Shown here: positions 5,774 through 63,927 of the stretch, one piece after another
Position numbering within the stretch: the stretch's first letter is position 1
Layout: each line of letters begins with the position of its first letter
Source: Obrimoposthia wandeli
Taxonomy: Eukaryota
DNA: 64,000 bases
Direction: 5' to 3'
NCBI GenBank assembly: GCA_977020255.1
Contig: CDROCS010002866.1
Location: forward strand, 434,001-498,000
Translations under genes and position numbers: made by a program
The notes under the pieces: generated by a model
What the model saw: the letters and a program-made list of their open reading frames with translations, nothing else
The model's database searches: none
What the model was told of the DNA's origin: nothing

Positions 5774-6013
5774 CAAGTTAACTATAAATGTTATTTAGCT
5801 TAAAAATCCAATTAACTATGCTAGAAAACCACAAATCAATGAGTAAAGAGCTTACACTTTTTAGCCGAACAGCAATGACTTACATGCAAAAAAACTAAAG
5901 AAAATGAGAGTTTTTAGCTTTTGCTGGCACAACATTAAGTAACCAGCTTTTGCATAAATATGTTCAAGCACATCAATATTAAATCCAGCTTACTCTTCTT
6001 AAGGAAGCGATTT

Positions 6014-6829
6014 ATGCCTTTAACTAATATCCCTCACTTTATGGTTGTTCACGGTGTGCAAACCGGCACTGATGATGATATTGAAAGCGACTTGCAAATT
6101 AAGAAGCTACTACACAAACAATTAGATAATATTGATTTGCATGTAGATTTTGAAGTTATAGGGGTTACCTATGAAGATATCAATGATGAAGCGCAAAGAC
6201 CTTACCAATGGCTGTTAGAAGCATTAGTAAAAAGTACTCCTTTAACTTCTTTACTATTAAGCAGAATTGCCGATGTAGTTGGCGATGTGTATAGCGCATC
6301 TAAAGGGACTAAAACCGCCAATAAAATTCGCGCTAAAATAAAAAAACGTATTTTGAAATCTTTCAATGCCGGTCACCCTGTCTACCTTGTCGCACATAGT
6401 TTAGGCACTGTTTACTGCTTGGATGTATTGTGTGAACTTATGCAAGAAAGTGATTATTTCTCGCACAACAGCTTAGATTGCTGGCCAGTGCATAGCTTTA
6501 TTTCTATGGGTAGTCCTTTAGGTTTAACCTCTATTTTTAAACAGCGAGAAATTCCACCTATCCGGCAGCCTTTAGCTTTTCCTTTTAGTTGGCATAATTT
6601 TCATCACCCTTTAGACCCAGTTGTTTCTGGTAATGCCTTTGGCGCGCCCACTAAATATAAAGGCGCGCTAGGCCCTGTAGAAAATACCTATAAAGAAGCG
6701 GCCAAAAGCGCTCACTGGTCGATTGAGGGTCATAGAACAGTACAAAGTGCACAGTGGCTTATTGCTCATATAAGTTATTGGCAAGAGCCTATCATAGGCG
6801 ATACTTTAATCGACATCGCTTGGGGATAA
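6014..6829 (+). CDS. Hypothetical alpha/beta-hydrolase (lipase-like) protein
   Basis: VHG motif near the N-terminus, AHSLG elbow, MGSPLG, D and C-terminal H. ATG 6014 chosen because AAGGAAG lies at 6001-6007 (the track starts at 5960). Confidence 0.7.
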   Translation: MPLTNIPHFMVVHGVQTGTDDDIESDLQIKKLLHKQLDNIDLHVDFEVIGVTYEDINDEAQRPYQWLLEALVKSTPLTSLLLSRIADVVGDVYSASKGTKTANKIRAKIKKRILKSFNAGHPVYLVAHSLGTVYCLDVLCELMQESDYFSHNSLDCWPVHSFISMGSPLGLTSIFKQREIPPIRQPLAFPFSWHNFHHPLDPVVSGNAFGAPTKYKGALGPVENTYKEAAKSAHWSIEGHRTVQSAQWLIAHISYWQEPIIGDTLIDIAWG

Positions 6830-6831
6830 AT

Positions 6832-7410
6832 ATGCTACAACACTGCGTTTTACGTAAAAGAGTTATTTTTATGGGTTTATTAGCTTCACTACAAGCTTGT
6901 TCTTCCAATCAAAGATTCAGTGCCTCAGGCCCTGTCACTATGCCTGATCAATCACTATCAGTGGCGATTATTTACTGGGACAAGCTGGTAGGCCGCACGT
7001 GGTATGGAGCTAAACTTAATATTGTACAATCAGATGTTAGATTAAGAGTGTGCCAAAAAGGGGCCATTGTTAAACGTTTTGATGAAAACAATACTAGTCA
7101 AACCTTGCAGCTTAAAAAACGCGCCGGTGACACAAAAATACTGAGGCTAAACGATTTAGGCCAACTGATAGATAACACACCTGATGCTCCATCTACATCT
7201 GTAACAGAGCAAAATAATTGTGCTAAAATTTTAGTCGATAATAAAAACGCTAAACAGCAGGAACTCATCGTCAATACCGCCCCTAGCTTAGCGATCACTT
7301 GTCAAAGCGTGAAACAAAACCGCTACCCTAAACCGGGTTTGTACCCACTGGGAAAAATTAGCAAAAGCGATATAGAGCCTGATGCAAAAGCGAACCTGTG
7401 CCCTAAGTAA
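6832..7410 (+). CDS. Hypothetical lipoprotein
   Basis: ATG 2 nt after the upstream stop; basic N-terminus, hydrophobic stretch and LQAC lipobox. The track ORF starts at 6754, overlapping the upstream gene. Confidence 0.6.
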   Translation: MLQHCVLRKRVIFMGLLASLQACSSNQRFSASGPVTMPDQSLSVAIIYWDKLVGRTWYGAKLNIVQSDVRLRVCQKGAIVKRFDENNTSQTLQLKKRAGDTKILRLNDLGQLIDNTPDAPSTSVTEQNNCAKILVDNKNAKQQELIVNTAPSLAITCQSVKQNRYPKPGLYPLGKISKSDIEPDAKANLCPK

Positions 7411-53056: not shown

Positions 53057-53518
53057 ATGAGTGGTAATCAAATTTTTCGCAGCGTCATCGCCAGTGCTAT
53101 TGCTGCAGCTTTAATCCCCTTTTTATTAACCAAATTCGCCGGAGTTAACGTTCCATATGAAATCAATATTTTAGTCATCATTTTTGTCGTTACACTTGCT
53201 TGTTGTGCTTTATCCGCTTTTGGAACGAAAGCAGATACTGATTTAAGCACTTCGGCAGAAAGAGAAAATGGTGCCGAATACGACGATGAAGATGAGTTCG
53301 AAGACGATGATAGGGAGCATGGCACCGTCAAATGGTTTAACGTATCTAAAGGGTTTGGCTTTATAACCCGTGAAAACGGAGATGATGTCTTTGTTCATTT
53401 CAGAAACATTCGCGGTAGAGGACATCGTTCATTAAGTGAAGGTCAACAAGTGAAATTTCACACACGTGATAGCGATAAGGGCCTTCAGGCTGAAGATGTG
53501 TCTATTCTAAGAACATAA
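53057..53518 (+). CDS. Membrane-anchored cold-shock-domain protein
   Basis: Two N-terminal TMs, an acidic linker, then a canonical CSD ([21 protein letters not shown]). Confidence 0.88.
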
Positions 53519-53658: not shown

Positions 53659-54507
53659 TCAAAACAAACTTGTTTGAATTTTTTCTTGCTCCCACAAAGA
53701 CAATACTTGAATATCAGACCTGTACTGATTCAACAGCTGGCTAAAATACTTTGCGAACAAAGGCGCTTCAACATTATCTGGAGTATGAAAAAAGAAGTAA
53801 GGCGTTAAGCCATCATCCATCCATTGCGCTGCCTTGAGCACCCATTGCATGATTACTTTTTTGGCTAGAGACCTGTGCATAGGAATAATGATACGTACGA
53901 ATGGGCTTTGCCCAGTAGCTAACACATGAGCAGGTACTTTTGGTTTTACTCTTAGCGCTTCTATGGTGGCAGAATCCGTTAACTGGTTATTTGAAAACAA
54001 ACTTCGCGTATCGAAAATTACTCTATTAATCCTATACTGATGTAATAGCTGATTAAATTGCTGCTCTATCGGATCTTTACGATAAAAATCCAAACTACGT
54101 ACTTCTACCGCATAATTAAAGTCATTTGGTAAATGTTCTAAAAAACGGCGCAATGTTGGCAATTCATTGGCGCCAAAATATTTATCTAGCTGCAGCCAAA
54201 CAATTCCCAATTGATGCTTTATTAACGAGATACGGTTCAGGAAATCTGTTACCTGCTTTGAACAATGGGTAAGACATTGCTGATGTGAAATTTCTTTCGG
54301 AAATTTGAAACAGAACCGAAACTGTTCAGGTACTGTTTCACTCCAGTTGCGCAAATTACTTTCGCTGGGTAATCCGTAAAAAGAAGTATTTCCCTCTACA
54401 GAGGAAAAACAACTAGAATACTGCTGTAAAGACTGATTAGATGACGATTTAAAAGGATACCATTTGTTATGATGCCATTGCGCTAAGCCTAAATAAACTT
54501 TTGTCAT
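53659..54507 (-). CDS. DUF72 (YecE-like) protein
   Basis: SVEGNTSFYGLP, FCFKFPKEISH, YFFFHTPDN. Confidence 0.88.
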   Translation of the reverse strand: MTKVYLGLAQWHHNKWYPFKSSSNQSLQQYSSCFSSVEGNTSFYGLPSESNLRNWSETVPEQFRFCFKFPKEISHQQCLTHCSKQVTDFLNRISLIKHQLGIVWLQLDKYFGANELPTLRRFLEHLPNDFNYAVEVRSLDFYRKDPIEQQFNQLLHQYRINRVIFDTRSLFSNNQLTDSATIEALRVKPKVPAHVLATGQSPFVRIIIPMHRSLAKKVIMQWVLKAAQWMDDGLTPYFFFHTPDNVEAPLFAKYFSQLLNQYRSDIQVLSLWEQEKIQTSLF

Positions 54508-54642
54508 AAATACAACTTAACAATCCATTTAATTTAAATTAATAATAACCTATTAATTTAATAACTAACTAATATACATTTACACTATTTAAATAAAATA
54601 TTTGAAATTACTCCAACAACGATAATAAGGTATTTTTATAAA

Positions 54643-55410
54643 ATGGATTTCGCTTCACTGATCGGCATTATATCGGGTATTGCCTTGATTGTATCGGCTA
54701 TCTTTTTGGGCGGTACACCTGATGTATTTTTAAATATACCTGGTATGATGATTGTTGGTGGCGGTACATTGGCCGCTACCTTACTGACCGTCCCTTTTAA
54801 GGATGTTTTAAATGGTATGAAGGCTGCCTATATCGTGTTCGCTAGGGATAAAACCAACCCTTCCGATATGATAGATACCATGATAGAACTCAGCAAAATA
54901 AGCCATCGTCATGGTCTATTAAAAATGACTCATATCAAAACGGAGTCGAAAGTACTTAAACGCGCTTGTAATTTATTGGCAGAAGCCGCCTCAGAACAAG
55001 TGATTCGTAACACACTACAAAATGAAATAGATTCACTCATTGCTCGCCACTTTGCTGTTCAAGATGTTTTTAAAAAAATGGCAACTTACGCCCCTGCCTT
55101 TGGTATGCTGGGTACGTTGATTGGCTTGATTCAAATGCTTAGTCAACTGGACAACCCCGAAACTATTGGCCCAGCAATGGCCGTAGCACTGTTAACTACT
55201 TTTTACGGCTCTCTTTTAGCAACGATGGTATTCACCCCTATCGCCGGAAAACTTAGAGCAAGAACACTTACAGAGGTCACTAACTTACAAATTATCCGCG
55301 AAGGCAGCATTAGCATTTTAACTAATGACCAATGGGCGCATGTGTACGAACAACTTTCAGCATACCTGCCAGAAAACAAACGCAACTCTATCTACAATAC
55401 TGAAGAATAA
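54643..55410 (+). CDS. MotA/PomA-family stator A subunit (divergent cytoplasmic loop)
   Basis: Four TMs; APAFGMLGTLIGLIQML and IGPAMAVALLTTFYG are collinear with PomA. Confidence 0.9.
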   Translation: MDFASLIGIISGIALIVSAIFLGGTPDVFLNIPGMMIVGGGTLAATLLTVPFKDVLNGMKAAYIVFARDKTNPSDMIDTMIELSKISHRHGLLKMTHIKTESKVLKRACNLLAEAASEQVIRNTLQNEIDSLIARHFAVQDVFKKMATYAPAFGMLGTLIGLIQMLSQLDNPETIGPAMAVALLTTFYGSLLATMVFTPIAGKLRARTLTEVTNLQIIREGSISILTNDQWAHVYEQLSAYLPENKRNSIYNTEE

Positions 55411-55420
55411 CGGGTAGCAC

Positions 55421-56287
55421 TTGATGAAACATACAATTGATATCTATGAAGATAGCGACGACAACGGCTGGATAGTTACTTATGCTGATCTAGTCACTTT
55501 GCTATTAGTATTTTTCATATTACTTTTTTCGGTATCAACTATTAAAGAAGAATCGTTTGAAGAGACAATTGATTCTGTTAAAACGGCATTAAAAGGAACC
55601 GGCAAAGGTTCAAACCAAGGAGCTGGATCCGGCAGTAAAGATGATAAAGATTCGACCAAAGTCGAAACAGGGACGGTACCCACTGATTCTTTAGATCCAT
55701 CGACTGAAACAGGCGACAAACAACAAGCGCCCTCCGAGGAAGAGAAACCCTTGATCACTACCCCTTTTGCTCTGCTACCCGTTCAGCAGGCGACTCCTCA
55801 ACCTGATACTCGAAAAGAGGAGAGACAGAAAAAACAGGAGATGGCACGCGTCACAAGCGAAGTCACAAAACTATTAAAGAAAGCCGCTAGTGACAACGAT
55901 GCCAAAGTATCCGCAAATAAAGATGATAGAATCGTTATCAATGTGCGTGGAGATGTCTTTTTCAATCCAGGATCCGCCCAGTTCAAAAGAGAGGCAATGC
56001 CGATTATGGATGGCATAGGTAATATTATACGCAAGAATAATGCTTTCAATCTTGCGGTGGGTGGACACACGGATAACAGCCCGATAAGCACCAATAGATA
56101 CCCATCAAACTGGGAACTCTCCGCTATCAGAGCGACCACTGTATTACGTTATTTTGTACGCGGCGGCATGAGCCCTGATAGAGTTACTGCAACAGGTTAT
56201 GGCGAGTCGACTCCAATAGTAGCCAACGACACTGAACAACACCGTGCTGATAATAGAAGAATTGAATTTGTACTAGAGCGGAAATAA
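55421..56287 (+). CDS. MotB/PomB-family stator B subunit with OmpA-like peptidoglycan-binding domain
   Basis: WIVTYADLVTLLLVFFILLFS TM with the conserved Asp; GHTDN, NWELSAIRA, NRRIEF. Confidence 0.9.
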   Translation: MMKHTIDIYEDSDDNGWIVTYADLVTLLLVFFILLFSVSTIKEESFEETIDSVKTALKGTGKGSNQGAGSGSKDDKDSTKVETGTVPTDSLDPSTETGDKQQAPSEEEKPLITTPFALLPVQQATPQPDTRKEERQKKQEMARVTSEVTKLLKKAASDNDAKVSANKDDRIVINVRGDVFFNPGSAQFKREAMPIMDGIGNIIRKNNAFNLAVGGHTDNSPISTNRYPSNWELSAIRATTVLRYFVRGGMSPDRVTATGYGESTPIVANDTEQHRADNRRIEFVLERK

Positions 56288-56289
56288 CA

Positions 56290-56655
56290 ATGAAAAAACC
56301 ACTATTTGAAATAGAGAATCTAGACGACACAAACCGTGATGAATATCGACTTTCTCCATCAGATGAAGATAACCTTAAGCTAGTCATTGCTGGCAAAGAA
56401 GTTGAAGTCGTAAATATATCTGGCAATGGCATTGCTTTTAAATTTACGGGTAATGTCAAAAAAGCGACCTATAAAGTTATTTTAGAGTTCACTGCAGAAG
56501 AGAAACACCATATTGAATGTGCCTTAAAAGTATTGCGCCAGGATCCTCCGGTCTATAGTGGAACGCTAATAGATCTCACTCCTCATGATCTACGCGCTAT
56601 AGGACAACTCATCATAAACAGCCAAAAAAGAGCAATCAGAAGAGGCAGAGGTTAA
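56290..56655 (+). CDS. Stand-alone PilZ-domain (c-di-GMP-binding) protein
   Basis: RDEYR (RxxxR) and NISGNG (D/NxSxxG) motifs; begins 2 nt after the motB stop. Confidence 0.75.
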   Translation: MKKPLFEIENLDDTNRDEYRLSPSDEDNLKLVIAGKEVEVVNISGNGIAFKFTGNVKKATYKVILEFTAEEKHHIECALKVLRQDPPVYSGTLIDLTPHDLRAIGQLIINSQKRAIRRGRG

Positions 56656-56686: not shown

Positions 56687-56792
56687 CTTCACTGTGTGAA
56701 GCGCAGTATTTGTGTTACTGCAAATGAAAAAACATTCGCTCTAAGGAGCGGGCTGCTCACCCTTGGATGATTTAGGTTTCGCCTAATTCATC
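56687..56792. other. Cluster of five adjacent hairpins; possible structured RNA or REP-like element
   Basis: Stems CTTCAC/GTGAAG, GCAGTA/TACTGC, GCAAATG/CATTCGC, AAG-GAGC/GCTC-CTT and GATGA-TTAGG/CCTAA-TCATC. Confidence 0.35.
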
Positions 56793-56957: not shown

Positions 56958-56974
56958 TGCGGGGTGGAGCAGCT

Positions 56975-57032
<58 letters not shown>

Positions 57033-57034
57033 CA
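56958..57034 (+). tRNA. tRNA-fMet (CAT), initiator, copy 1
   Basis: 77-nt cloverleaf, CAT anticodon, GGG/CCC anticodon-stem pairs, 1:72 mismatch, encoded CCA. Confidence 0.97.
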
Positions 57035-57095
57035 TTATAATAAATATAGTTATATATTAATTATTACTCAACTTTCTAAACACTGATTTCTTTGA

Positions 57096-57112
57096 TGCGG
57101 GGTGGAGCAGCT

Positions 57113-57170
<58 letters not shown>

Positions 57171-57172
57171 CA
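57096..57172 (+). tRNA. tRNA-fMet (CAT), copy 2
   Basis: Identical to copy 1. Confidence 0.97.
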
Positions 57173-57262
57173 AAAGAAATAACATGTAATTTGCAGTCTT
57201 CAGTTCTCATTTTACATTAAAGATTATTAAATTTAATAATCTAACTAAACTGGTATTTTTGA

Positions 57263-57279
57263 TGCGGGGTGGAGCAGCT

Positions 57280-57337
<58 letters not shown>

Positions 57338-57339
57338 CA
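57263..57339 (+). tRNA. tRNA-fMet (CAT), copy 3
   Basis: Identical to copy 1. Confidence 0.97.
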
Positions 57340-57434
57340 AAAGAAAAGAATGTAATTTTTAGTCTCAGTTCTAATTTTACATTCAAGATTTAAGATTATT
57401 AAACTTCATAATCTAATTAAACTGATATTTTTGA

Positions 57435-57451
57435 TGCGGGGTGGAGCAGCT

Positions 57452-57509
<58 letters not shown>

Positions 57510-57511
57510 CA
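57435..57511 (+). tRNA. tRNA-fMet (CAT), copy 4
   Basis: Identical to copy 1. Confidence 0.97.
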
Positions 57512-63446: not shown

Positions 63447-63523
63447 TGGGGTGAACGACGGGGTTTGAACCCGCGACCGCCGGAATCACAATCCGGAGCT
63501 CTACCAACTGAGCTACGCTCACC
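63447..63523 (-). tRNA. tRNA-His (GTG)
   Basis: GGTGAGCGTAGCTCAGTTGGTAGAGCTCCGGATTGTGATTCCGG...CACCCCA, with G-1. Confidence 0.96.
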
Positions 63524-63539
63524 ACTGAGCAATATAAAA

Positions 63540-63624
63540 TGGTGCGGGAAGAGAGACTCGAACTCTCACACCTTACGGCACTAGAACCTAAATCTAGCGT
63601 GTCTACCAATTCCACCACTCCCGC
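63540..63624 (-). tRNA. tRNA-Leu (TAG)
   Basis: 85 nt with a long variable arm, anticodon loop TTTAGGT, CCA end. Confidence 0.96.
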
Positions 63625-63692
63625 GTGGCTCAACAAAACCTATATCAGAGTTTTGTATCTTTATTGCATTTATACTGCGCAATAACAGTAAA

Positions 63693-63777
63693 TGGTGCGG
63701 GAAGAGAGACTCGAACTCTCACACCTTACGGCACTAGAACCTAAATCTAGCGTGTCTACCAATTCCACCACTCCCGC
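63693..63777 (-). tRNA. tRNA-Leu (TAG)
   Basis: Identical copy. Confidence 0.96.
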
Positions 63778-63842
63778 GTGGTTGTTTCTATATAAAATAA
63801 AAACTTTTGCTGCTTTTTTGATAACTGTGCAAGCTCAGTTAA

Positions 63843-63927
63843 TGGTGCGGGAAGAGAGACTCGAACTCTCACACCTTACGGCACTAGAACCTAAATCTAG
63901 CGTGTCTACCAATTCCACCACTCCCGC
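63843..63927 (-). tRNA. tRNA-Leu (TAG)
   Basis: Identical copy. Confidence 0.96.

Follow-up and report, generated by a model that had tools for sequence, protein, structure and literature searches.

PilZ proteins that act on the A subunit of the flagellar stator are known from several bacteria, and the PilZ-stator links characterised so far, those of YcgR, MotI, FlgZ, MotL and FlgX, are all flagellar. YcgR of Escherichia coli binds MotA through its RxxxR motif and its PilZ domain's C-tail helix (PMC10140304), and the PilZ-family protein FlgX attaches to the cytoplasmic domain of the stator (PMC11725899). YcgR, MotI/DgrA (Bacillus subtilis) and FlgZ (Pseudomonas) consist of two domains, YcgR_N and PilZ, and are encoded away from the stator; FlgZ, which is specific for MotC, shows that a PilZ effector can be confined to one stator. 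Single-domain proteins are found in lateral flagellar systems: FilZ of Pseudoalteromonas is encoded in the lateral flagellar cluster (PMC10304486), and MotL of Shewanella putrefaciens, a stand-alone PilZ protein of 144 amino acids (aa) encoded 34 bp after the lateral motB, regulates that motor with cyclic dimeric guanosine monophosphate (c-di-GMP) (PMC8203827). Here we describe a motA-motB-pilZ operon in which a single-domain PilZ protein is encoded in the same operon as a stator. It lies in a 64,000-nucleotide stretch, hereafter the window, of contig CDROCS010002866.1 (positions 434,001 to 498,000 of the forward strand), deposited in assembly GCA_977020255.1 under Obrimoposthia wandeli. From the comparative analysis below we propose, with about an even chance of being right, that the operon may encode an additional stator of the flagellum which, in the manner of motAB-motL, brings its own c-di-GMP clutch.

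The likeness to MotAB-MotL concerns gene order and size. In both systems motA, motB and a stand-alone pilZ follow one another on the same strand and the PilZ protein carries both c-di-GMP motifs and no YcgR_N; in a Marinomonas member of the present family the PilZ protein has 144 aa and starts 37 nt after motB, the corresponding values for MotL being 144 aa and 34 bp. However, the MotL gene is the last of a lateral flagellar cluster and its protein works with the H+-dependent stator of that system, whereas the present MotAB stands alone, has Na+-type residues and lacks E96 (PomA numbering, used throughout). With Vibrio PomAB it shares the Na+-site threonines, P151, the acid at 114, K203, a B subunit with aspartate, plug and OmpA domain, and a position outside flagellar clusters; unlike PomAB, it is altered at R88, E96, E97, E99, R232 and GQNP, has an attached PilZ gene and shows no detected sigma-28-like promoter in the window. 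Supernumerary stators, such as MotAB of S. oneidensis, MotCD/MotAB of P. aeruginosa, MotPS of B. subtilis, PomA2B2 of Aeromonas and the Desulfovibrio sets, are extra units that compete for one rotor, sometimes horizontally acquired and encoded outside flagellar clusters. Of the cases tallied in Pseudomonadota genomes, 60% had extra copies of motA and 53% of motB (PMC13063649), and Desulfovibrio species have 3-4 stator sets, which are uncharacterised (PMC9039648). Unlike the present pair, the characterised supernumerary stators retain charges of the R90/E98 type and lack a PilZ gene of their own. More distant are ExbBD, TolQR, AglRQS, GldLM and ZorAB, which belong to the same superfamily (Pfam MotA_ExbB) and share the 5:2 ion-driven principle but have a condensed or different cytoplasmic domain and neither the MotB plug nor the OmpA anchor.

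Subunits of the operon and their closest relatives

In a phmmer search against all PDB chains, residues 1-247 of the window MotA aligned without gaps to residues 1-247 of V. alginolyticus PomA (8bri/8brd; E 6.5e-45), with about 35% identity over the 247 residues, which confirms the register that a first-pass annotation of the window had proposed. The channel residues P151, T158, T185 and T186, listed there as kept, are indeed retained, together with P199 and K203, and the glycine zipper is common to both proteins. Its readings on the rotor-facing side were also correct: R88/K89/E96/E97/E99 of PomA are H/R/T/H/K in the window, LLVDG (111-115) is LLAEA, with the acid at 114 retained as Glu, and GQNP (228-231) is NDQW, followed by Ala in place of R232. 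The charged rotor-contact pair R88/E96 of PomA, equivalent to R90/E98 of E. coli MotA, reads H88 and T96.

The AlphaFold2 model of MotA (pLDDT 77) places helices at 73-90, 92-97, 103-113 and 118-167. All 23 Foldseek matches of this model at E < 1e-3 are flagellar stators, with template modelling (TM) scores of 0.74-0.84; PomA comes at the top (0.80-0.84), followed by MotA of Paenibacillus, Clostridium, Aquifex, Campylobacter and Bacillus, and TolQ/ExbB reach TM scores of 0.3-0.5 at E values around 1e-2. The protein has four transmembrane helices, a large four-helix cytoplasmic domain between the second and the third of them, and a continuous third transmembrane helix, and as modelled it fits the FIT, TGI4 architecture in the scheme of Puente-Lelievre et al., in which the non-flagellar relatives (ExbB, TolQ, AglR, GldL, ZorA) have condensed cytoplasmic domains (PMC12505986). 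The marks of the GIT clade, a condensed two- or three-helix cytoplasmic domain and an ExbD/TolR-type B subunit, are absent from the window pair. With the TolQ model the window MotA gives a match at E 0.0027. The NCBIfam equivalogs are all missed: the score is 209.5 bits for PomA (NF006527; cut-off 341), 187 for MotP (cut-off 394) and 154 for NF006583 (cut-off 237). No strict PomA or MotC equivalog was found among 10 representatives typed with NCBIfam.

According to Hu et al., T158/T185/T186 form the Na+ site; all Na+ stators have these residues, and H+ stators have Ala instead (PMC10374538). These threonines are present in PomA and in the whole family, whereas the H+-driven MotC of P. aeruginosa has A158 and A185 in the one alignment made. 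As a test for Na+ coupling they are weakly selective, because nearly all of the 150 nearest representatives carry them.

The B subunit, numbered from its TTG start, has W17, T20 and D23 in the transmembrane region, followed by the plug, a low-complexity linker of about 75 residues rich in S/T/P/E/K and a complete OmpA-like peptidoglycan-binding domain; an adjacent gene encoding a transmembrane aspartate, a plug helix and an OmpA-like domain is what a FIT-type B subunit calls for. Its PDB matches are MotB, MotS and PomB, and its best NCBIfam model is MotD, at 190 bits below the cut-off of 283. T20 and D23 and the leucine signature described in the first-pass annotation were both recovered: the residue 11 positions after the aspartate is Leu in the window, in the family and in PomB, and Val in P. 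aeruginosa MotD and B. subtilis MotB (alignment). This Leu/Val position in the transmembrane helix of the B subunit reportedly correlates with the coupling ion, as Terahara et al. are said to have noted in 2008. Together with the threonines of the A subunit, it allows Na+ coupling to be reasonably inferred. By sequence and predicted structure, the window unit is a complete MotAB-type, flagellar-type 5:2 stator, similar to PomA/MotP. In two Nitrospinota loci (L057, L070) MotB is called as a protein of 474 aa, compared with 240-290 aa elsewhere, and starts 36-37 nt after motA.

The third gene encodes a single-domain protein of 121 aa without the YcgR_N (PilZN) domain. Both c-di-GMP motifs announced for it were seen, RDEYR at 16-20 and NISGNG at 42-47, with 21 residues between R16-R20 and N42-S44-G47. 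Against Pfam PF07238 it scores 20.3 bits, below the gathering threshold of 22.5, and the Solidesulfovibrio and several Marinomonas orthologues do give the Pfam PilZ match. The family profile, searched against PDB, found the PilZ domain of Alg44 (E 3e-9), PP4397 (4e-5) and YpfA/MotI (9e-3). The AlphaFold2 model built from a 73-sequence alignment (pLDDT 84.9) shows six strands forming a beta-barrel and a C-terminal helix at 98-120, residues 1-14 being disordered; its top Foldseek matches are c-di-GMP-bound Alg44 PilZ (TM score 0.67-0.78), with Lpg0364 and MotI also at the top, and further matches are the PilZ domain of cellulose synthase, MapZ and the PilZ domain of YcgR. The PilZ fold of the protein is confirmed at the level of these models. 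Among the 73 orthologues R16, R20, G47 and Q112 are invariant, S44 is conserved in 96% and K113 in 88%, in a protein whose mean column identity is 21% and whose orthologues outside Nitrincolaceae are 12-23% identical to that of the window. Q112-K113 sit in the C-terminal helix, within the pattern [IL]xx[FYL][VI][LIV]xxQKxx[IL][RK]. A profile search of a large protein database, limited by its word index, returned 50 close relatives, MotL not being among them.

The stator subfamily, its pilZ gene and its rotor-facing surface

A word-indexed protein search returned 120 clusters at 60-95% identity to MotA, from Neptunomonas, Nitrincola, Marinobacterium, Pontibacterium, Pokkaliibacter, Balneatrix, Motiliproteus and Marinomonas and from a metagenome-assembled genome (MAG) of Thermodesulfobacteriota. 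Scanning one genome per species gave at least 595 related loci, the best 80 of which have 57-98% identity and add Neptuniibacter, Chromatiales, Desulfobacula, Desulfotignum, Desulfobacterium, Desulfamplus and Nitrospinota. In an exhaustive search of 1.84 billion representatives the whole family is one cluster at 50% identity (334 bits); the next clusters are a Solidesulfovibrio lineage (49%, 261 bits) and two Desulfobacterales lineages (45% and 44%), followed by the canonical continuum at about 40%. Members are currently named 'motility protein A', 'MotA/TolQ/ExbB family', 'MotP', 'hypothetical protein' or 'PilZ domain protein', and in the papers searched and read no account was found of PomA-like stators forming a separate, stand-alone subfamily devoid of E96 and tied to a PilZ gene; the subfamily thus appears to be so far undescribed.

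In the maximum-likelihood tree a long stem (100/99) separates the family and its Solidesulfovibrio sister from 139 canonical representatives. Basal, paraphyletic positions are taken by a delta-like MAG, Nitrospinota and Desulfobacterales, and the gammaproteobacterial members form one nested clade (100/97) whose branching tracks taxonomy: Chromatiales, an uncultured marine group, Marinomonas, then Motiliproteus with Nitrincolaceae. Across the three phyla MotA is 56-98% identical to that of the window (56-60% in Desulfobacterota/Nitrospinota, 57-63% in Marinomonas), and MotB about 31-42%. By these comparisons the family is a distinct, slowly evolving stator subfamily. Its simplest history would be an origin outside Gammaproteobacteria, in Desulfobacterota-like bacteria, with one transfer into the class and long vertical retention; the branching order points to vertical inheritance in Marinomonas and in Nitrincolaceae, including relatives of Osedax symbionts such as the window organism.

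The pilZ gene was found to accompany the stator across this range. When the open reading frames (ORFs) within 10 kb of motA were clustered in 81 loci, the only universal clusters were motA (81), motB (79) and a small downstream ORF (66). Considering that ORF-based counting under-calls PilZ (53, then 66 loci), stop-to-stop frames were used instead, and a PilZ frame with RxxxR and [DN]x[SG]xxG was then seen after motB in 71 of 78 loci from three phyla. Five of the seven remaining contigs (L031, L036, L037, L046, L054) end too soon, so that PilZ follows motB in 71 of 73 informative loci and is truly absent from L065 and L075 only. The link between the stator and the c-di-GMP receptor is very strong on this gene-order evidence. 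In Desulfobacterales the last 23-65 nt of motB are shared with the PilZ frame, which suggests tight translational coupling and means that gene callers may miss PilZ; in these loci (L050-L085) the overlapping frame often has no obvious ATG and starts with a conserved LFWKKK-like peptide. The Solidesulfovibrio sister has the same motA-motB-PilZ order, with a Pfam PilZ match, and its MotA still has E96; the PilZ link is therefore older than the loss of E96.

Beyond these three genes, no conserved fourth gene or partner and no second MotA homologue was found in any of the 81 loci. The neighbours are lineage-specific housekeeping genes: yecE and a gene for a cold-shock-domain protein in the window's group, lptD-surA-pdxA-rsmA-apaG in Marinobacterium/Nitrincola, an RND pump and purF in Marinomonas, and dinB in Desulfobacula.

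The residues at positions 88 and 96 were counted by anchoring on the G91-L95 motif in 61 non-redundant family members and 119 canonical representatives; this count replaced the automatic MAFFT column for position 96, which was unreliable in the large mixed alignment. Position 96 is acidic in 1 of the 61 family members compared with 104 of the 119 canonical stators, and at position 88 the family has Arg 31 times and His 29 times, while 104 canonical stators have Arg. The missing E96 of the window is thus a family-wide trait. Many members keep D97 or E99, for example HRH-GDVE in Marinobacterium/Nitrincola; Desulfobacterales read RRQ-SKIK. The loss of E97 and E99 in the window means little in any case, because these positions are not conserved in canonical stators, 97 being acidic in about 30% of them and 99 mostly hydrophobic. 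An acid at 114 (61/61), R/K89 (58/61) and K203 (61/61) are kept. The loss of rotor-contact residues claimed in the first-pass annotation therefore stands for E96, family-wide, and counts for little at E97/E99, which are variable in canonical stators; the acid at 114 is retained, and R89 largely so.

Position 232 is A, L, M or I in the family, compared with Arg in 48% of canonical stators. In basal members NNNP takes the place of GxNP, which in Nitrincolaceae has become N-D-H-Y or N-D-Q-W, and G115 is Ala in the gamma branch. The signature of the window's subclade, HRH-THIK, LLAEA and NDQWA, is the most derived, and HRH-THIK is identical in all seven closest relatives. Relaxation in region 85-100 is, in relative terms, modest. 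That the cytoplasmic domain of MotA bears a novel patch of conserved surface residues was considered and rejected: the 15 family-specific invariant positions (e.g. S5, S11, N31, G34, T49, Q140, D141, S190) are scattered and none lies in 85-100.

No member of the family was found on a plasmid, all matches in a tblastn search of a plasmid collection being below 45% identity. The same search recovered the reference genes used here, pomAB of V. parahaemolyticus and motCD of P. aeruginosa. The former came from a 31.8-kb V. parahaemolyticus 'plasmid' (L093) with dxs-ispA-xseB-pomAB-thiI. An 847-kb record typed as a conjugative plasmid (L092; NZ_CP131792.1, P. aeruginosa p2014S05-249-1) contains fleN-fliA-cheYZAB-motCD-parA-cheW; the accessions of these genes are of the WP_0030830xx type, which we take to be typical of chromosomal P. 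aeruginosa, and the record may be a cointegrate or an assembly artefact. A different orphan stator pair, of P0125/P0352 type, was seen in a Desulfobacteraceae MAG (CP070700.1; L088:8001-10382): it keeps E96, is named PomA by NCBI and is followed by a 273-aa ORF without Pfam match and then by pfk, and thus makes a further uncharacterised stator module of Desulfobacterota.

Promoters and surroundings of the operon

We investigated the region upstream of motA for promoters. In the window, a sigma-70-like TTAACA-18-AATAAT occurs at 54517-54546, such matches being no commoner than in shuffled sequence, and the best sigma-28 match in the intergenic region scores 12/17, at background level. In four Neptunomonas loci (L011, L012, L016, L028) a strongly conserved block TATGGTGTAC...CTGCTATACTCAAG, which is not in the window, lies about 30-100 nt upstream of motA. 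A 15/17 sigma-28 match in two of them (L012, L028) was rejected, as it is not conserved in L011 and L016 and probably lies within yecE.

Near-perfect sigma-28 consensus promoters at a suitable distance were recognised in three loci of an uncultured marine Gammaproteobacteria subclade: TCAAG-N14-GCCGATAA in L063 (L063:9936-9964), TAAAG-N14-GCCGATGA in L075 (L075:9925-9951) and TAAAC-N14-GCCGATGA in L054, about 79 nt upstream of motA. Scores of at least 15/17 were seen in 5 loci; shuffled sequences would give about 0.4, and the reverse-complement control gave none. The scan is insensitive, because the positive control, V. parahaemolyticus pomA with TAAAA-N14-GTCGATAC, scores only 14/17. This subclade keeps the family signature, without an acid at 96 (M96-D97). 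In L075, which is abundant in marine metagenomes (193 index blocks), motA-motB is followed by lpxC, without PilZ; the contigs of L054 and L063 end too early to show whether PilZ is present. The promoters point to flagellar use of the stator in this subclade.

The features of the window around the operon are collected in Table 1. The three genes lie head to tail, with gaps of 10 nt between motA and motB and 2 nt between motB and pilZ; this tight packing between yecE and a tRNA array agrees with the first-pass annotation, its gaps and neighbours having been confirmed from the ORFs. The hairpin downstream of pilZ is the probable end of the operon. Likewise, the reported lack of flagellar genes was borne out: the 48 non-overlapping ORFs of at least 100 aa across the window, all scanned with Pfam, are housekeeping genes (purine synthesis, mreBCD, gatCAB, plsB, clpXP, tig, a branched-chain amino-acid ABC transporter, yhdP), with no flagellar, chemotaxis or GGDEF/EAL gene among them. 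The claim of orphan status holds in so far as the module stands alone among housekeeping genes; it is not diagnostic, since pomAB of V. parahaemolyticus, between xseB-ispA-dxs and thiI, is equally outside flagellar clusters.

Table 1. Coordinates of the operon and neighbouring features in the window.
Feature	Position	Strand	Evidence or remark
Intergenic region yecE/motA	54508..54642	+	Divergent genes; presumed operon promoter region
motA-like, 255 aa, ATG start	54643..55410	+	Pfam MotA_ExbB E 4.9e-26
motB-like, 288 aa, TTG start, ATG 3 nt later	55421..56287	+	Pfam MotB_plug E 8.5e-16, OmpA E 1.1e-18
Stand-alone pilZ, 121 aa	56290..56655	+	Pfam PilZ 20.3 bits; family profile; AlphaFold2; Foldseek
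Terminator-like hairpin, 36 nt past pilZ stop	56691..56707	+	Consensus scan only: 7-pair stem, weak T-tract
DUF72/YecE gene	53659-54507	-	Pfam; 5' neighbour of motA
Four tandem tRNA-Met(CAT) genes	56958-57511	+	Directly after operon
One tRNA-His(GTG) and three tRNA-Leu(TAG) genes	63447-63927	-	

The window has a G+C content of 39%. A 13-kb syntenic stretch has 86% DNA identity to the MAG Oceanospirillaceae bacterium 9NakV-11, and between the window and the 'Osedax' symbiont Rs2 the MotA proteins share 94% identity. The junction 3' of pilZ is variable, because a close relative (L001) has a dksA-type zinc-finger gene after pilZ in place of the tRNA-Met array. On the other side of yecE, the window encodes a 153-aa protein (53057-53518, + strand) with a C-terminal cold-shock domain, a very acidic linker and a hydrophobic N-terminus that is probably membrane-spanning; its gene adjoins yecE in L001 too. 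Membrane-tethered cold-shock-domain proteins are unusual. Elsewhere in the window two adjacent ORFs of 289 and 218 aa (5960-6829 and 6754-7410, both + strand) are without a Pfam match at E <= 1e-6.

Possible roles of the operon and their meaning

As an accessory stator, the complex of five MotA and two MotB subunits would compete, as a supernumerary unit, for the flagellar rotor, and the co-translated PilZ protein would serve as its private c-di-GMP switch, with one-to-one control of engagement or ion flow. With c-di-GMP bound at RxxxR and DxSxxG, the Q112-K113 helix and the RxxxR arm of PilZ would dock on the cytoplasmic domain of MotA, at or near the remodelled rotor-facing surface (residues 88-99 and 228-232). 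We infer such c-di-GMP-dependent docking because R16, R20, G47 and Q112 are invariant and Q112-K113 sit in the C-terminal helix. Docking might uncouple the stator from FliG, as a clutch or brake comparable to MotI, FlgZ, YcgR and MotL, or it might be needed to hold the stator at FliG, as in the case of FlgX. The binding of PilZ to MotA, the direction of its effect, the Na+ coupling and the flagellar action are thus all put forward here as predicted features. In favour of this role are the flagellar-type architecture, the Na+-type signatures, the conservation of the three-gene module, the selection seen on MotA and on the c-di-GMP residues of PilZ, and the precedents of MotL, YcgR and FlgX. Links to the flagellum come from the sigma-28 subclade, from the frequency of extra stator copies in Pseudomonadota and Desulfovibrio and from the likewise isolated pomAB of Vibrio.

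Several observations weigh against this accessory flagellar role. The acid at 96 is absent in 60 of the 61 members, R88 is His in the window, residues 96-99 of the window carry a net positive charge with no acidic residue, R232 is lost family-wide and GxNP is altered in the Nitrincolaceae and Marinomonas branches. Hu et al. found that PomA-driven motility cannot do without the charges of R88, E96 and D114 and that R232 is important to it (PMC10374538); in the hybrid motor in E. coli studied by Onoue et al., single, double (AA) and triple (QQQ) neutralisations of PomA still rotated and the quintuple AAQQQ gave no rotation (PMC6079164). Additionally, neither a sigma-28 nor a sigma-54 promoter was seen upstream of motA in the window or in most loci, the Neptunomonas block resembles a promoter of the extended -10, sigma-70 type that may include an operator, and no flagellar gene lies within 10 kb in any of the 81 loci. 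The change of the rotor-facing surface is real across the sequences compared and is consistent with a weakened or altered coupling to FliG, without proving its absence.

A second reading, the idea of the first-pass annotation, is a non-flagellar use. MotAB would then be a 5:2 motor or gated Na+ conduit under c-di-GMP control that has ceased to engage FliG; it might serve to decoy or absorb a motor regulator, to sense the envelope or a surface, or to power another machine, with PilZ as its switch or even its driven partner. The family-wide loss of E96, the altered R232 and GxNP and the window variant with H88 and no acid at 96-99 are in its favour, as are a module always alone among housekeeping genes and without a flagellar neighbour in 81 loci, the absence of a FliA promoter from most loci, NCBIfam scores well below every flagellar equivalog cut-off, a nearly obligatory PilZ, unlike ordinary stators, and the unusually high conservation of MotA, which suggests a constrained partner surface. 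Nevertheless, every known non-flagellar relative has a condensed domain, whereas the present pair keeps the four-helix domain along with plug and peptidoglycan anchor; beside the module there is no conserved gene for a candidate partner; the family-specific invariant residues do not cluster on the cytoplasmic domain, with none in 85-100; D114 and K203 are kept, and R/K89 in 58 of 61; and one subclade has sigma-28 promoters. To our knowledge, the named genera that carry the module are all described as flagellated. On balance we regard non-flagellar use as rather unlikely, though a serious contender. Its most explicit form, which we offer tentatively and with somewhat more doubt, is a self-contained nanomachine derived from a flagellar stator, in which PilZ-c-di-GMP, not FliG, would dock on the MotA face and open the plug; in this way c-di-GMP would turn on a Na+ conduit or rotor anchored to the peptidoglycan, which might, for instance, signal the state of the envelope or a surface or power a partner encoded elsewhere. 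The first-pass annotation had seen in the locus a c-di-GMP-gated rotary unit not meant to turn FliG. Of this, the complete ion-driven stator, its Na+-type signatures, the PilZ link in 71 of 73 informative loci and the altered rotor-contact surface are well founded, and the gating by c-di-GMP is predicted; the assertion that the unit is not for FliG is not supported in that form, considering the variable E97/E99, the acid kept at 114, the equally orphan pomAB of Vibrio and the sigma-28 subclade.

It is improbable that the pair is simply the host's principal stator, that is, its PomAB orthologue with a drifted surface compensated in FliG and an adjacent PilZ protein acting as a conventional brake. 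Such a role would fit the gapless PomA alignment with all channel residues kept, the equally orphan pomAB of Vibrio, the sigma-28 promoters in L063/L075/L054 and the rotation of single, double and triple neutralised PomA mutants (PMC6079164). However, the gamma clade is nested in Desulfobacterota/Nitrospinota sequences (100/97, 100/99), and the gene therefore came by transfer into a lineage presumably already having stators; the PomA model gives 209 bits against a cut-off of 341, the family stands on its long stem apart from the 139 canonical representatives, and the FliA promoter is absent in the window and in most loci. That the locus is a decaying remnant, a pseudogenised extra stator beside an unrelated small ORF in chance order, is scarcely credible: the non-canonical rotor-contact residues and the PilZ score below the Pfam threshold could be read in this way, but the three ORFs are intact, their order is kept in 71 of 78 loci over three phyla, MotA is 56-98% identical, HRH-THIK is the same in the seven closest relatives, and R16, R20 and G47 of PilZ are invariant.

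Control of flagellar motors by c-di-GMP has so far been known from a few unlinked brake proteins; here a single operon joins the stator to its receptor, in hundreds of species belonging to three phyla and with a consistent change of the rotor-facing surface. Database names hide a coherent family, which should be recognisable by S5, G34, S102, S190 and Y235, by the lack of an acid at 96 and by a downstream PilZ with the QK helix. If the non-flagellar reading were true, this would be the first flagellar-clade (FIT) stator in a non-flagellar job and would bear on how 5:2 motors are recruited. If the pair still drives the flagellum, the supposedly universal E98-type contact would be dispensable or replaceable, and the operon would offer a clean one-stator, one-effector system in which to tell clutch from brake, with Marinomonas mediterranea as a candidate host.

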